Source: Phaeosaccion multiseriatum (Eukaryota; Protista; Ochrophyta, other classes). Taken from it: a stretch of 64,000 bases of DNA. A program made the translations under genes and the position numbers. Positions 5,362-58,600 of the stretch are shown here, one piece after another. Each line of letters starts with the position of its first letter. The first letter of the stretch is position 1. The notes beneath the pieces are model-generated. The model was not told the origin of the DNA. It did not search any database and saw only the letters and a program-made list of their open reading frames with translations. The stretch covers positions 930,001 through 994,000 of the forward strand of contig OZ218954.1 in NCBI GenBank assembly GCA_965112735.1, read 5' to 3'.

Positions 5362-8300
5362 TCAGGCACCACCAGGTGAGGAGGGCTGGGGAGGAGGAGT
5401 ACCCCCGCCATCACCATCACCAAAGCCCAACCCAGACGATGACAGGGAAGGAGAGGAAGAAGAGGGTCCCGCCCCCCCCGGCATCTCCCCCCGTCGTGTA
5501 GGAGTAGTAGACAGAGGAAGAGATAGAGACGACACCGACTCCGTCAAGCCCTGTCTCAGCCGCCCACCCCCGTCTCCAGACCCGGATCCTTCAGGAGCCG
5601 ATGAGGCCACCATTGCTGCCAGCTCCACTTCCTCCATGTGCTGCTGCTGCGCGATGGCGTGAAGCAGAGACGCCTCTACGTACGGTGCCGCCATGTCACT
5701 CTCAGCGCTCTGCGTACTCTCCATAGAAGCGTTCAGATCCACCGAAGCAACCGCAACTCCACCCTCAGCCTCGCGTGTTGGAATCCGCGCCATCGTCGCC
5801 GTCGCCAGCTTGGGGGACTCGGGAGACTCCTTCCACGGCATAACAAGTTCCTGCGCTGTATCACCAACTGCTACTGCTGCTGTTGCCGCCGCCGCTGATG
5901 CTCGATCACCAACTGCTGCTGCTGCTGCTGGTGGTACTGCTGTATCACCAGCTGCTGCTGCGGCTGTTGTTGCTGCCGTATCACTCACTCTTACTGCTCC
6001 TCCTACTCCTCCTTGGACCCCCATCCCTCTCTCTCTCTCCTCCTTCTCTGCTGCTGCTTGCAACAGGGCCGCTGCAGTTGGCGACAGCGCCGCTCCCCCG
6101 GGCATCGAAGCGGCCAAGGCGCTCAGGGAAGAAGACAATGAAGAAGAGGAGGGGCGGCGGTGGTGCGGATGGGAAGATTCTCTTTGAGCAGGTGGTGGTC
6201 TGCGTGAAGCAAGAGCTGCGGGAGATGGCGCCGCTGCTTCCTGCTGTATGGCAGCCCCATTCTCCTTGGCAGCTTCCTCGTCCTCCCTCCCCTCCTTTGC
6301 TGCTTCCACCTCGTCCTCGTCCTCCTCCTCCTCCTCTACTCCTCCTTCCAAGATGTTGGCTGCGGCGACATCAGCACCACCCGGCGGCGCCACTGCAACC
6401 GTATCACCAACTGCTACTGGTGCTACTGCTGCTGCTACTCCTACTCCGTCTCCAGCTGCCTCTGTCGCTGTTTCTTGTCTTCTCAAGACCCCCCCTTCAC
6501 CTCGAGTATCGCCACCCCGCCTCGCCACAACGGCATGCTCCTCGACGCAAGCTCGAACGCTCGAAGCTACATTAGCAGTTGGTGCTACAGCAGCAGCAGG
6601 GAGCAAGGCGTCTGGTCGACGCTGTTCAGGGCCGCGACTTGCCGCGGCATGGCTTGCAAGGCCAATTGCTGTGTCACCAACTGTTACACTTGCCGGATGA
6701 CTAGCAGCGCCCGTTGCTTCTACTTGTACTGCTGCTGGTGCTTCTACTGCTGTTGGTGATGCTGCTGCAGGTGCTGCAGAAACTGCTGCTCGTGCTAATG
6801 GCGGTGGTGGTGGCGTTGTTTCTGCCGCTGCTTCTCCCGTTGCTGCTGCTGCCGCTGCTGTTGGTGCTGCTACCGCTGCTGTTGGTGCTGCTACCGCTGC
6901 TGTTGGTGCTACTACCGCTGCTGTTGGTGCTGCTACCGCTGGTGCTGGTGCTACTACCGCTGCTGCTGTTGGTGCTACAGCTGCTGCTGCCGGTTGTGCT
7001 GGTGCTGGGGCTTCAGATGCGGCGCCGAAAGCGTCATCAAAGGCTGCCCACCCCACATCCACGTGAGGAGAAGGAGCCGCAGCCGGCACCGCAGACCCAG
7101 TCGCAGGTAGTGATACAGCAGGCGGTTTAGCCCTCTGCTGCTGCTGCTGCTGCTGCTGCTGCTGCTGCTGCTGCTGCATCTTGCGAGGGTCGCCCTTGTG
7201 AGTAGACCGAGGAGGAGGCGGCAGCGCCTGTGGCCCTCCTTCACCGGCACGCGGGAGTGGAAACCCCACGGGAGTATTGCCCGGTGTGGCAAGTCCGGCG
7301 GCTGATAATGCAGCAGCAGTAGCTCCTCCCGATAAGGAAGCCTTTCGTGGATCCTTGGTCCTCAGAGCGGCCTTTCGAGGATCCTCTTGCTTAAGCCCCC
7401 GGCTGGTACCCAAGGACAGACCACCACCTCCTCCTGCTGCTCCTCCTGCTGCTGCTGTTCCTGCTCCTCCTGTCCCTGCTATTGGTAGTGCTGAAGCCGA
7501 AGGAGGCTGTCCAGCAACGCTCACGTCAAAGCTTGCCTTCCACTCCCCCGCACCTTCACTCCCACTCCCGCCACTCCCGCTGCTGGTCTCGCCAAAGCCC
7601 AGCACCAGCCCTCCTGTACCACCAACTGACGTACCACCAATTGCTGCTGTATCACCAGCTGCCACACCTCCCCTACTGCCTCTCCTCTTGCTGCTCCCAC
7701 CCGTAGAAGGCGGAGAAGGTAGACCGAAAGCAGCGCCTCCGAATGGTTGAGTGGGTCCCGCCGCAGGGGCCACCGGCACTGTACCAGCACCAGCACCCGC
7801 ACCAGCCGTTGGTGCTACAGCAGCAGACATGTGGGCAGGAGCACCAGAAGCAAAGGTTGACCCCCCTAGGGATTTCTTACGTGGGTCCTTACGTGGGTCC
7901 TTACGTGGGTCCTTACGTGGGTCCTTACGCGCAGCTCCATCCCGCGGCGCAGACAAGAAAGCGGTCGAGGAGGCAGCGGTGGGAGCTGCGGCCAAAGGGG
8001 GGGTGGTGGCAGGTATACTTCCTCCTCCTGCTGCTGCTGCTGCTGCTGCTGCTGCTGTATCATCAACGGCTGCAGCTGTCCTTCCTCCTCCTGTGGGGGC
8101 AATCAGCATTGGCGACGACCCTGCCCGAGCACGTAGTCCCGCGCCAGCCCCCGTCCCCACTGACAGCCCTGCTGACCCCAGCCCATCGCCTCTACCTCCT
8201 CCTCTTCCTCCACCTGCCCCTCTGTCACGAATGACCAGTCGCCGCCCCCTCTTGGTCTCTGCAATTCCGAGGCAGTTCTCCTTCCAATCGGACAACTCCA

Positions 8301-55677: not shown

Positions 55678-58600
55678 TCAAGTGGCGGTGCTACCCCCGG
55701 GGGCTGCGTACGTCAGCATCCCCTCCATTGTCCCAACGCCATGAGTGAGTGGCCTCAGCTGCTGCTGCTGCTGCTGCGGTTGTTGTTGTTGTTGTTGTTG
55801 CTGTTGTTGTTGCTGTTGTTGTTGCTGCTGCTGTTGTTGTTGCTGCTGTTGTTGTTGTTGTTGTTGTTGCTGTTGCTGTTGCTGCTGCTGCTGCTGCTGG
55901 GGCGGAGGGGAGGGCGAAAAGTTGACGAGCGCCGGCGCGACCGACGGACCTGCTGCCATACCGAAGTTGAAACCGTCTGCCTGCTGCTGCGGCTGTACCA
56001 CCAACTGCTGCTGGTAGTGGGCGAGGGGCGTGAGGCAAATGGTGAAGTACTTGGGTTGGCGGAGGTTGTCGCGAACAAGGATGATGGATAGAGGACCGGC
56101 CTGGAGAGAGGGAGAGGGAGAGAGAGAGAGAGACAGAGTGGGAGGGGGGGCAGGACGTTAGGAACGATCAGCAGAGAGAGAAAAAACACCATTGAAAATG
56201 TCAAGACCGGCCTGAAGAGAGGGAGAGAGGGAGAGAGGGAGGGGGGGGGGAGGCAGGAGGGATCACCATCTTCTACGCCCCGCACTGGCTCTCTCACTCA
56301 CCGGCAGGCCGAACTTGTTCCTTCCCTCGACTTGGAGAGTCTGGCTCTGGTCCTGCTCGCCTCCTTCGCCACTGCCAGGTGCAGGCATTGGGCCCAAAAT
56401 CTTGCTAATGGCGGCGAAGGTGTGTTGCAAATGTAGCTCAGAGACAAGGTTGAAGATGGTGTACCCCGCCATCTCCTCCACACTGTTGTGCGCCGTGGCC
56501 GCCACCATTCGCTTGTTGCAGTCCACCAGGGCGCCGTTGGGGAGGGCAATGGCCATTGCCACTGTAGCCTCTTGGAACACCCTGCGGGAGGCAGGGGTGG
56601 CCAAGGGGCCGACGTTGGCATCCGCAGCAGTAACCATGGCCGTTGGTGATACACCTGCTGGTGCTGCTGGTACCTCGGGTAACGGCTGCTGCTGTCCGTG
56701 TTGTTGTTGAAGGAGAGCTTGTTGCTGCTGCATGACCAACTGCTGCTGCTGCTGCTGCAGTTGGTGCATGTGCTGTAGATGAGGTGGAAGGGGAGAGCCG
56801 CCGGCCCCCACAACCCCCAAGGGCGGGGGCGTGGCACCACCACATGCAGCCGCCGCCGCCGCCGCCACCGCCGCTGACGCGCCCCCCTCAACGCCGCTGG
56901 CCATGATGTTTCGCATAAAGTGCTGCTGCTGCAGCTGGAGCCTCTGCTGATGCTGTTGCTGGAGCAGTTGACGGTGCTGACTGGGGTCCCCCCCCGAGGC
57001 GAGCGAGGAGAGGGTCGGGTCGTTGTGATGGTGTGCGTGGGCGGGGTGCGCACCAGTGAGGTGTTGTGGTTGTGGTTGTGGTTGTGGTTGTTGTTGCTGC
57101 TGCTGCTGTTGGTGTGTGGGAGGCAGTAGGGGTTGTTGCTGGGATGGCTGCGGCACGGGCACCGGTACCGGGCCGCCGCCCACGCCTGCTGCCGCCCGTG
57201 CTGCCCAAGAGACGGGGCTCAAGTCGCGAATGATGGCACCTTGCGACGGCACTGCTGCTGTCGTTGGAGCTTGGGCTGCCGCCGCCGACGCTGCGGCTGC
57301 CACTGCTTGTGCCTGGGCCGCCGACGGGGCCGACTGGAGGGCGGGGAAGACTGCGCCCCCCGGGTACTCCAAGGAGGCCGGGGGAGGTATCTGGTCCCCA
57401 CTACTCCGCCGCGCAAGCATGGCCGCGGCGACTGCTGCGGCGGCTGCGGCAGCTCCGCCATCTGCTGCAGGAGCACCAACGACTGCAGCAGGGGCAAGCG
57501 CCACGAGACCCTCGCCGCTGAGCAGCTTCTCGTTTTGGCTCTTGAGGGCTCGGATGAGGTTCCCCGCCTCCTCCAGCACACTCCGCTTGCTCATGTTGGC
57601 TTGGTGCCCGCAGCTCGTCAACAGAGTACGCAAGTCCTCGATCAAGCCGCTAATCTGGGTTGAGCGCCGCTGCTCGCGAGCATTCCTCTCCAACCTATAT
57701 ATATATATATTTACATTTCAGTACAAGATAGATATTATCAGAAAGAACAATTGGGTGGGGTGTGTGAGTGCGTTTCGCACAACAGCGAGGCAAACAAACA
57801 ACACCGAGACCGGGTCAGACTCGTTTCACAATACATGTCTCCTCCCTCCCTCTTCTTACCGTCTATTCACTGGCGCCTGACTGGCCTTGCTGTCCTCCTG
57901 TCCTCCGGTCTGGGACGACGCCTTGCTGCCGGAGGTGTCTGCACCGCTCGTGTCGCCCCCAGGCGTGTCGCTGTTGGAGCTGACATCTCCTCCTCCAAGT
58001 CGCCGCTTGTGTGCCGCGGTCGGCTTCATCTCGCCGCTGGTGGTGCCGTCGTCTCCCGAGGTTATGGAGCCCGACGCCCCCCCCCCCCCAGCCCCCACGC
58101 GCTTGACTCCCCTTGAGGGCAGTTGCGGCTGCGGCGCCGCGTAGTGCGGGTACTGCGGTGCCTGGGGGACCGGGGGGGAGATTTGCGCTTGTTGTTGTTG
58201 TTGTTGTTGTTGGTGGTGGTGGTGGTGGTGGTGGTTGAGCTGGAACTGCTGCAGGGGTAGGGGTACCTGCTGGGGGTGCTGTGTCTGCTGCATGAGGTGG
58301 GAGTGCTGGGCCGGTTGCCGGGGGGGGTGCACCTGGGCATCCTGATTGTCCGGCGGGCCTTGTTGTCCCCCCTCCTGCTGCTGCTGCTGCTGCTGCTGCT
58401 GCTGCTGCTGGTGCTGCTGCTGCTGCTGCTGCTGGTGCTGTTCCTGGCGCTCCTGCGGCGTTTGCTGGTCCGGTTGGCCCTCTTGCGATGCACCATCCTC
58501 CGTGGTGCTGCCTCCGTCCACACTACTGCCCTTCTTGCTGCTCTCGTCGCCCGTCGTGGTGCCGCTGCAGCTACTCAGCATTCTGCGGGAGGAGGGCGAC

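Follow-up and report, generated by a model that had tools for sequence, protein, structure and literature searches.

How can one exact DNA word of 12-17 bases come to lie, again and again, in the coding exons and introns of a eukaryotic nuclear genome? The question is posed by a 64-kb stretch of contig OZ218954.1 (positions 930,001 to 994,000; GenBank assembly GCA_965112735.1) from Phaeosaccion multiseriatum, a microalga related to the brown algae; this stretch is the window within which all copies were counted and to which the coordinates refer. The window has a GC content of 54-62% and is saturated with microsatellites, and the word, lodged within its CAG/CTG triplet repeats, exceeds chance in exact form by about 300-fold. 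The 15-mer GCTGTATCACCAACT occurs exactly 10 times, against 0.00 in shuffles. The original prediction for this DNA had counted 26 exact copies of the 10-nucleotide (nt) core ATCACCAACT where about 0.1 would be expected, and the recount agrees: 26 copies, 16 on the plus and 10 on the minus strand, against 0.10. For the 14-mer GTATCACCAACTGC, 17 exact, 17 one-mismatch and 18 two-mismatch copies compare with 0.1, 0.5 and 2.7 under an order-5 Markov null. An unbiased k-mer count places the word and its sub-words at the top of the non-periodic 10- and 12-mers of the window, with no other non-periodic k-mer close. The word is real, is a feature of the DNA, is restricted to its lineage as far as the data reach, and is unlike any described class of eukaryotic repeat. 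For its spread we favor, with rather less than even confidence, a passive, ultra-short, non-autonomous micro-repeat that templated repair copies from one CAG/CTG tract to another, that slippage multiplies locally, and whose copies selection then filters.

The anatomy of the word is tightly bound to its surroundings. A position matrix built from 34 aligned copies with at most one mismatch has a conserved 17-nt block, CT-GTATCACCAACTGC-T, bordered on both flanks by a GCT/CTG periodicity in a single phase that fades over about 20 nt. Read on this lattice the block is GCT GCT [GTA TCA CCA ACT] GCT, equivalent to CTG-TATCACCAA-CTG; the word is a fixed, frame-neutral interruption of a triplet tract, 9 nt long (TATCACCAA, or TTGGTGATA on the other strand) and always in one register. 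A 9-nt, frame-preserving interruption of a CAG tract had been described from the outset, and that description stands for the CAG/CTG tracts of the window. Among 57 short gaps between (CTG) tracts of at least two units, TATCACCAA is the commonest gap of at least 6 nt, and nearly all gap lengths are multiples of 3. Neighboring copies on the same strand keep the same step: all 12 spacings below 70 nt (15, 15, 18, 21, 21, 24, 27, 39, 45, 45, 45, and 66 nt) are multiples of 3, and because six of these are intronic, the phase is set by the triplet lattice rather than by a reading frame.

Comparison of the flanks and of unlinked copies reveals no terminal inverted repeats (TIRs), no tail, and no larger element around the copies, in keeping with the earlier claim that TIRs, a poly-A tail, and a larger element were lacking; the word, which might have turned out to be a fragment of a known transposable element or satellite, is not part of anything longer. 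Unlinked copies are similar in register over a median of 19 nt, and their longest matches, 30-51 nt, consist entirely of CTG lattice. The best direct repeat in the flanks, sought as a sign of target-site duplication (TSD), measured 4.6 nt, against 4.1 nt in a cross-pair control, and suggestive flank duplications at 13548, 10491, and 44697 were not above that control. These edges bear on the idea that a transposon or introner family, its body lost in most cases, left the word behind as its terminal fragment (a TIR or a footprint). Inverted word pairs 90-375 nt apart in the window would suit such an origin; the missing TSD, the halt of shared sequence at the CTG lattice, and the retention of four exonic copies in mature RNA, which are thus not removed as introns, make it very unlikely. 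The pair at 13173/13548, considered as TIRs or the ends of a hidden intron, encloses ordinary coding sequence. Two intron ends, each beginning with the rare ATCGCC variant, were considered as a shared intron-end cassette and align only at their word copies. A retroposon fragment or tail (from a short or long interspersed element, SINE or LINE) was rejected on the symmetric matrix, its sharp edges, and the same GCT lattice on both sides. Just upstream of the word, two unlinked copies at 13986 and 29692 also have in common the 11-mer TGCCAATGGTG (13975-13985 and 29706-29716), which may be the trace of a slightly longer copied patch or chance.

Is it the DNA or an encoded peptide that is kept? 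In the longest open reading frames (ORFs) the word is translated as AVGDT or QLVIQ (the gene's sense strand being the word's antisense strand) or as VSPT, and a single RNA-supported exon (38400-38857) holds, in one reading frame, a first copy read as QQLVIQ and a next read as AVGDTA. The original prediction gave CAG-TTG-GTG-ATA (QLVIQ) as the typical reading; it does occur, but GCA-GTT-GGT-GAT-ACA (AVGDT) is commoner in the long ORFs. The stop-containing frame, AGT TGG TGA, is unused in ORFs. All nine VGDT peptides are encoded as GTT GGT GAY ACN, though GTT and GGT are minority codons; no positions of the word vary less than the third-codon positions of this frame, and the recurrent variants T4C, A10G, and T2A are all nonsynonymous. 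Where a peptide held fixed would let its synonymous positions vary freely, those positions are invariant. Resampling of synonymous codons with the ORFs' own usage and the proteins kept yields 0.24 core copies, and codon shuffling yields 0.03, against 18 observed, an excess that could have vanished under a codon-aware null and did not. Three translations, invariant synonymous sites, and this excess mark a DNA word rather than a peptide repeat under protein-level selection. The word is kept as DNA, independently of frame and strand, which is the DNA-level creation or maintenance first proposed for it.

The same counts speak to an artefactual origin, either as a by-product of composition or codon usage in low-complexity coding sequence rich in Ala and Gln, or as an adapter or assembly artefact. 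The word does reside in low-complexity triplet repeats, and it loosely resembles an oligonucleotide used in cDNA synthesis. Against this, the codon-aware nulls give 0.24 and 0.03 for 18 observed, the order-5 Markov null gives 0.1 for 17, copies occur in introns too, and both a DNA run and an RNA-like run from a second sample contain copies. Even with three mismatches allowed, the SMART cDNA oligonucleotide matches nothing in the window. An artefact is excluded.

The runs in question are public, and their contigs were mapped to the 6-kb stretch 38400-44399 only. Run X1 covers introns and is therefore DNA. Run X5, from the second sample and labelled "DNA?", gives spliced contigs that skip seven GT-AG introns, which makes it usable as a transcript source. 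With splice junctions ambiguous by 1-4 nt, it supports a plus-strand gene model of 38400-38857, 39159-39317, 39584-39854, 40068-40395, 40707-40817, a further 60 nt, 41610-41705, and 41871-41970. Its mature exons contain the copies at 38525, 38721, 39655, and 40270, identical in both samples, and X5 departs from the assembly at three positions within exons (38453, 38594, and 38630). The copies at 41514, 41529, and 41574 lie within an intron that ends at the AG of 41610-41611. Absence from independent reads would have told against the word; it is present in both the X1 DNA and the X5 RNA-like run and so does not stem from the assembly. Organisms B and C of the second sample's study gave nothing matching on the 6-kb stretch. 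Most of the 1593 X1 and 702 X5 contigs mapped there pile up on the copies. Summed contig depth, which is not equivalent to copy number, rises at every copy from about 500 to 5,000-127,000 in X1 and from about 30 to 500-22,000 in X5, and the loose ends of the piled-up contigs have a CAG-rich consensus. These pile-ups imply that the word with its CAG flanks is common to hundreds or more other genomic loci and transcripts.

Site by site, the copies are as follows, with mismatches counted against GTATCACCAACTGC and translations in the gene sense of the long ORF.

5858 to 5871, plus strand: exact 14-mer GTATCACCAACTGC, in the long minus-strand ORF 5365-8343, AVGDTA.
5903 to 5916, plus strand: two-mismatch copy CGATCACCAACTGC, ORF 5365-8343, AVGDRA, 45 nt from the copy at 5858.
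5942 to 5955, plus strand: one-mismatch CCAGCTGC variant, ORF 5365-8343, AAGDTA.
6401 to 6414, plus strand: exact copy, ORF 5365-8343, AVGDTV.
6575 to 6588, minus strand: one-mismatch GTAGCACCAAC variant, antisense to ORF 5365-8343, VAPTA; the variant occurs only in that gene.
6671 to 6684, plus strand: two-mismatch copy GTGTCACCAACTGT.
6749 to 6762, minus strand: two-mismatch, degenerate copy.
6899 to 6912, minus strand: two-mismatch copy GTAGCACCAACAGC, within a 21-nt-period array at 6844-6989.
6965 to 6978, minus strand: two-mismatch copy GTAGCACCAACAGC, within the same 21-nt-period array (6844-6989).
7616 to 7662, plus strand: three adjacent degenerate copies (7616, 7631, 7649), 15 and 18 nt apart, in ORF 5365-8343.
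7805 to 7818, minus strand: two-mismatch copy GTAGCACCAACGGC.
8057 to 8070, plus strand: two-mismatch copy after (CTG)10.
9743 to 9756, plus strand: exact copy, minus-strand ORF 8653-11190, AVGDTP.
9851 to 9864, plus strand: GTACCACCAACTGC variant, AVGGTA.
10404 to 10417, plus strand: GTACCACCAACTGC variant in the other frame, QQLVVQ.
10491 to 10504, plus strand: two-mismatch copy with an exact 10-nt core, EQLVME.
12805 to 12818, plus strand: two-mismatch copy, minus-strand ORF 12449-16318, RQLVVQ.
13173 to 13186, minus strand: exact copy, antisense to ORF 12449-16318, RVSPTA.
13548 to 13561, plus strand: GAATCACCAACTGC variant, AVGDSS.
13959 to 13999, plus strand: two exact copies (13959, 13986) 27 nt apart, both AVGDTA.
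14580 to 14593, minus strand: one-mismatch copy, antisense, TVSPTG.
14709 to 14722, plus strand: GTACCACCAACTGC variant, AVGGTR.
15897 to 15910, plus strand: exact copy, AVGDTA.
20234 to 20247, minus strand: CCAGCTGC variant, ORF of the FYVE protein (plus strand), AAGDTG.
20387 to 20400, minus strand: GAATC variant, FYVE ORF, AVGDSV.
23857 to 23870, plus strand: exact copy, antisense in an ankyrin-RING ORF (plus strand), PVSPTA, 40 amino acids before the RING finger.
25643 to 25656, plus strand: exact copy, in the predicted last exon of a minus-strand LRR gene, AAVGDTAGA.
25782 to 25856, minus strand: 15-nt-period array of five degenerate units; the LRR sense strand reads CTGTACCACCAAC...
29692 to 29705, minus strand: exact copy, N-terminal ORF of the Pol X gene (plus strand), EAVGDTA.
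31459 to 31514, plus strand: three copies in a 21-nt-period array that occupies the 3' end of a Pol X intron.
31623 to 31660, plus strand: a pair of copies at a spacing of 24 nt in the following Pol X intron (31597-31773), with the sense polarity of the array at 31459-31514.
38525 to 38538, minus strand: exact copy, RNA-supported exon 38400-38857, QQLVIQ.
38721 to 38734, minus strand: exact copy, RNA-supported exon 38400-38857, AVGDTA.
39655 to 39668, minus strand: exact copy, RNA-supported exon 39584-39854, EQLVIQ.
40270 to 40283, minus strand: exact copy, RNA-supported exon 40068-40395, QQLVIQ.
41514 to 41587, plus strand: copies at 41514, 41529, and 41574, separated by degenerate 15-nt units, in an array that closes the RNA-supported intron at about 41176-41611 on its 3' side.
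44469 to 44482, minus strand: one-mismatch copy, antisense in an MFS ORF (minus strand), TVSPTG.
44697 to 44710, plus strand: GAATC variant, MFS ORF, AAVGDS.
55995 to 56008, plus strand: GTACC variant beside (GTT/GCT)n, upstream part of the bHLH-like gene region.
56639 to 56652, minus strand: one-mismatch copy, antisense in the bHLH-like ORF (minus strand), GVSPTA.
56728 to 56772, no strand assigned: near-palindrome GCATGACCAACTG(CTG)5CAGTTGGTGCATG inside the bHLH-like ORF.

The scan for GTATCACCAACTGC finds no copy from 44.7 to 55.9 kb, a region that holds the RPN11 and PDHB genes, and none in the exons of LepA; the original prediction had likewise seen none in the conserved exons of these three genes. 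The near-variants named in the original prediction exist, with two of them displaced by 10 (14709, not 14719; 7651, not 7661), and its host genes are in part confirmed: FYVE, MFS, and LRR by Pfam, and Pol X by eye from its GGYRRGK..HDVDVLI signature, while the TPR, TSET, and bHLH-PAS labels found no confirmation in Pfam. The near-palindrome at 56728-56772 is composed of two degenerate copies head to head across a switch from CTG to CAG, and resembles what a fold-back or strand-switch event would leave.

Because GTATCACCAACTGC is asymmetric, not being its own reverse complement, copies have a polarity, and this is patterned. In the long ORFs, which hold about three-quarters of the copies (1.28 per kb, against 0.18 per kb elsewhere), the gene sense strand reads GTTGGTGATAC in 20 copies and the opposite in 6. 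CAG and CTG tracts in the same ORFs stand at 112:24, a ratio from which the 20:6 of the word does not differ (Fisher p=0.58); exon polarity passively follows that of the host tract. At all four intronic loci the polarity is the reverse of that of most exon copies, and the sense strand reads CTGTAYCACCAAC (4/4 against 6/26 ORF copies; hypergeometric p of about 0.008). The tandem arrays at intron 3' ends, three of three in the window, have one sense polarity and abut the acceptor. In the Pol X gene the last copy of the array at 31459-31514 stops 23 nt short of the exon, which starts at 31538; in the TPR-like gene the last copy of 41514-41587 ends about 24 nt before an exon whose acceptor is RNA-supported; and in the minus-strand LRR gene the array at 25782-25856 ends 8 nt before the predicted acceptor (exon start 25773). 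Three of three arrays so placed hint at function rather than passive spread.

Here the main rival account enters, that the word is a functional cis-element under selection, most plausibly an RNA signal linked to splicing, or else a DNA site for a sequence-specific protein. We regard this as possible but doubtful. In its splicing form, to which the same doubt attaches, the pyrimidine-rich polarity CUGUAUCACCAACUG, with branch-like UCAC and CAAC, would act near acceptors, and the purine-rich polarity, which contains the donor-like GGUGAU, in exons or close to donors. The three intron-end arrays and the reversed polarity of the four intronic loci are what such a signal would call for, but a splicing or promoter signal would not be expected in the disordered linkers of long ORFs, in two frames, where most copies lie, and the polarity seen in exons is fully accounted for by the host tracts. 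The units of the LRR array do not contain the branch-like UCAC. No RNA-supported donor (0/7) carries the word at its +9 position, and none of eight pattern matches is a plausible sense-strand donor. As for a protein-binding site, the invariant block of 14-17 nt is longer than typical factor sites. The core ACCAACTG overlaps what we take to be Myb type I and type II consensus sites, which we treat as a lead only. A free-standing Myb or E-box site is rejected: CAACTG, to which the original prediction drew attention as an E-box/MYB-type core, has no enrichment of its own outside the word (40 observed, 38 expected), and most copies of the word lie in ORFs.

In the copying account that we favor, the microsatellite would be the homology handle of the word. 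We infer the mechanism as follows. A break or gap in a CAG/CTG tract would leave a repeat-ended 3' end that could anneal to any other genomic CAG/CTG tract, or to a transcript; where the template bears the word, repair synthesis would copy it. Once synthesis re-enters the triplet repeat, the end could re-anneal at home, adding 9+3n nt with neither a TSD nor a frame shift. Each event would provide an additional template, so that a single word, with a handful of mutant sub-lineages, would end up predominant, and slippage would generate local arrays. Selection would then act as a filter, removing the TGA-containing frame from ORFs and letting exon polarity follow the tolerated CAG tracts, while in introns the pyrimidine-rich polarity would accumulate at 3' ends. 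On this account the word would keep one register and the 9+3n geometry, lack TSD, TIR, and body, follow the tracts in abundance and polarity, split into variant sub-lineages, and form arrays of variable period.

The variants bear on whether copying has left lines of descent. Loci that are not linked share the very same one-mismatch variants, with four occurrences of GTACC, three each of CCAGCTGC and GAATC, and two of ...CTGG. Among the 17 one-mismatch copies there are 13 coincident variant pairs, for which independent decay has P=0.0004-0.03, depending on transition bias. Judged from these sequence comparisons, the recurrence points to copying with descent, and position-specific tolerance under selection could mimic part of the pattern. 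The GTAGCACCAAC variant, private to a single gene, indicates local amplification. The local arrays and this gene-private GTAGC variant would suit a minisatellite-like, head-to-tail origin within one array by slippage or unequal exchange, yet most copies are solitary at unlinked loci.

Several observations weigh against copying between tracts. One is the placement of the arrays at intron 3' ends, all in one sense polarity. No insertion event was observed, and both samples have identical sequence at the four exonic copies. A protein search with the FYVE protein was swamped by low-complexity words and aligned no orthologue, and an exhaustive search with the TPR-like exon returned one spurious repeat protein and no orthologue. 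Many copies today lack clean CTG flanks. The CAG tracts are short, which would make classical homologous recombination between them inefficient, and the other microsatellite classes of the window carry no comparable passenger word, although a fully generic mechanism might predict some.

It is also conceivable that the word is actively written. A dedicated reverse transcriptase- or telomerase-like enzyme might add it from an RNA template, resembling 3'-GUCGUC-AACCACUAU-GUCGUC-5', onto the 3' ends of CAG tracts, and re-alignment on the CAG part of that template would yield arrays; both parts of this proposal seem to us quite unlikely. Telomerase makes short templated additions at breaks, which are known as interstitial telomeric sequences, and the window does have arrays with a 15-nt period (9+6), a word always in one register between triplets, and no TSD. 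A single template is, however, hard to reconcile with array periods that are not fixed (15, 18, 21, 24, 27, 39, and 45 nt), and the recurrent variant sub-lineages fit many templates better than one. Rfam finds no family, and hence no RNA gene, in the window. The telomerase origin raised in the original prediction becomes unlikely on the variation of array periods, from 15 to 45 nt.

Copying and a splicing signal are compatible with one another: copying may supply the copies and selection choose the survivors. A bolder combination would have a genome with a dedicated enzyme and template, reverse transcriptase-like or recombinase-like, that writes the word into CAG/CTG tracts, and a cell that reads it in a polarity-dependent manner as a splicing-linked signal. 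We think this unlikely. Its polarity-dependent part, purine-rich after donors and in exons and pyrimidine-rich in arrays before acceptors, belongs to the same joint claim and is likewise improbable.

How far does the word extend beyond this alga? A search with the 19-mer met single copies in 32 of the JGI metagenome contigs and gave two single matches in IMG/VR viral contigs, both at chance level, and an exact-protein look-up for the FYVE ORF gave no record. For the plastid-type LepA exon the nearest sequence among the matches listed is from the brown alga Choristocarpus (86% identity), with a Logan contig at 72%. Neither the 6.6-kb Choristocarpus contig nor the 8.7-kb Logan contig contains the word or CAG tracts; together they amount to about 15 kb from distant relatives. 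Literature searched by sequence yielded only primers in unrelated papers, and searched by topic, no description of the word.

Known systems that come close to the word include those first invoked for it, HIP1 and the bacterial uptake sequences: as in these, an exact short word is strongly over-represented in genes and spacers independently of frame. The analogy holds only as phenomenology: the word is not palindromic, is tied to a microsatellite lattice, and occurs where uptake biology is not applicable. HIP1 of cyanobacteria (GCGATCGC) is likewise an exact short word, hundreds-fold over-represented in coding and non-coding DNA, independent of frame and unresolved as to its maintenance; it is, however, a prokaryotic 8-bp palindrome with no repeat lattice, whereas the algal word is asymmetric, 12-17 nt long, eukaryotic and nuclear, set in one CTG/CAG register, and different in polarity between exons and introns. 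The DNA uptake and uptake signal sequences (DUS/USS) of Neisseria and Pasteurellaceae are likewise scattered words, about 10-12 nt long, that occur in both genes and spacers with a density of about one per kb; these are maintained by the transformation bias of a known receptor and have no microsatellite context, and we know of no uptake-sequence or competence biology in ochrophyte algae.

Eukaryotic precedents share other traits. Short interstitial telomeric sequences are short, templated, TSD-less insertions at breaks, sometimes of a few tandem units, but the word exceeds them in copy number by orders of magnitude and its array periods vary. The mini-me elements of Diptera and the microsatellite flank families of Lepidoptera are dispersed repeats coupled to microsatellites and common to unrelated loci; they are transposon-derived, at least 100 bp long, and lie beside the microsatellite, whereas the word is 9 nt inside the tract with no body. 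Algal introners and miniature inverted-repeat transposable elements (MITEs) reach high copy number within genes, with a possible link to splice sites, but measure tens to hundreds of bp, have TIRs and TSDs, and are spliced out, whereas most copies of the word stay in mRNA and are translated. The proposed copying step itself is akin to the templated insertions of polymerase-theta end joining and to microhomology-mediated template switching, where a 3' end primes, copies a few to tens of nt, and returns. Known insertions of this type copy nearby sequence and are idiosyncratic, and to our knowledge none fixes one word genome-wide.

If copying is the true explanation, the word would be the smallest known dispersed eukaryotic repeat, spreading without an element body, a transposase site, or target duplication, and using the microsatellite as its homology handle. 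It would also offer simple repeats a new route to shape proteins, by carrying AVGDT, QLVIQ, and VSPT into the disordered linkers of unrelated proteins, and to shape introns as well, and it would be a natural read-out of the repair of CAG/CTG breaks, which is central to human repeat-expansion diseases. If the word is functional instead, a little-studied lineage of algae would have a signal, linked to splicing or acting in chromatin, that has yet to be described; if it is both written and read, it would be a short eukaryotic signal that is actively propagated rather than evolved site by site. On the practical side, thousands of such sites will mislead gene-finding and repeat-masking programs.

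The introns of the window have peculiarities of their own. The RNA-supported intron 40396-40706 of the TPR-like gene is almost entirely (GAG)26 followed by (CTC)40, for which a single hairpin of about 90 bp is predicted (minimum free energy -227.5 kcal/mol, z = -10.6); if formed, it would bring donor and acceptor together. An intron at 41176-41425 begins with GTTAGTCAGTC and runs straight into (AGTC)62, reiterating the donor-like GTCAGT, and several further introns in the window begin or end with tetranucleotide arrays that resemble splice signals. In the Pol X gene (31777-33921), a candidate TdT/Pol mu-like gene, the palm signatures GGYRRGK...HDVDVLI and RRLDIII are split by microsatellite-filled introns. 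Between the Pol X and TPR-like genes, a 51-nt inverted repeat of (GGA)n and GGATGGCAGTGGATGG units, 84% complementary (34016-34066 and 37825-37875), encloses 3.76 kb; it could mark the termini of an element or be no more than simple repeats in mirrored order.

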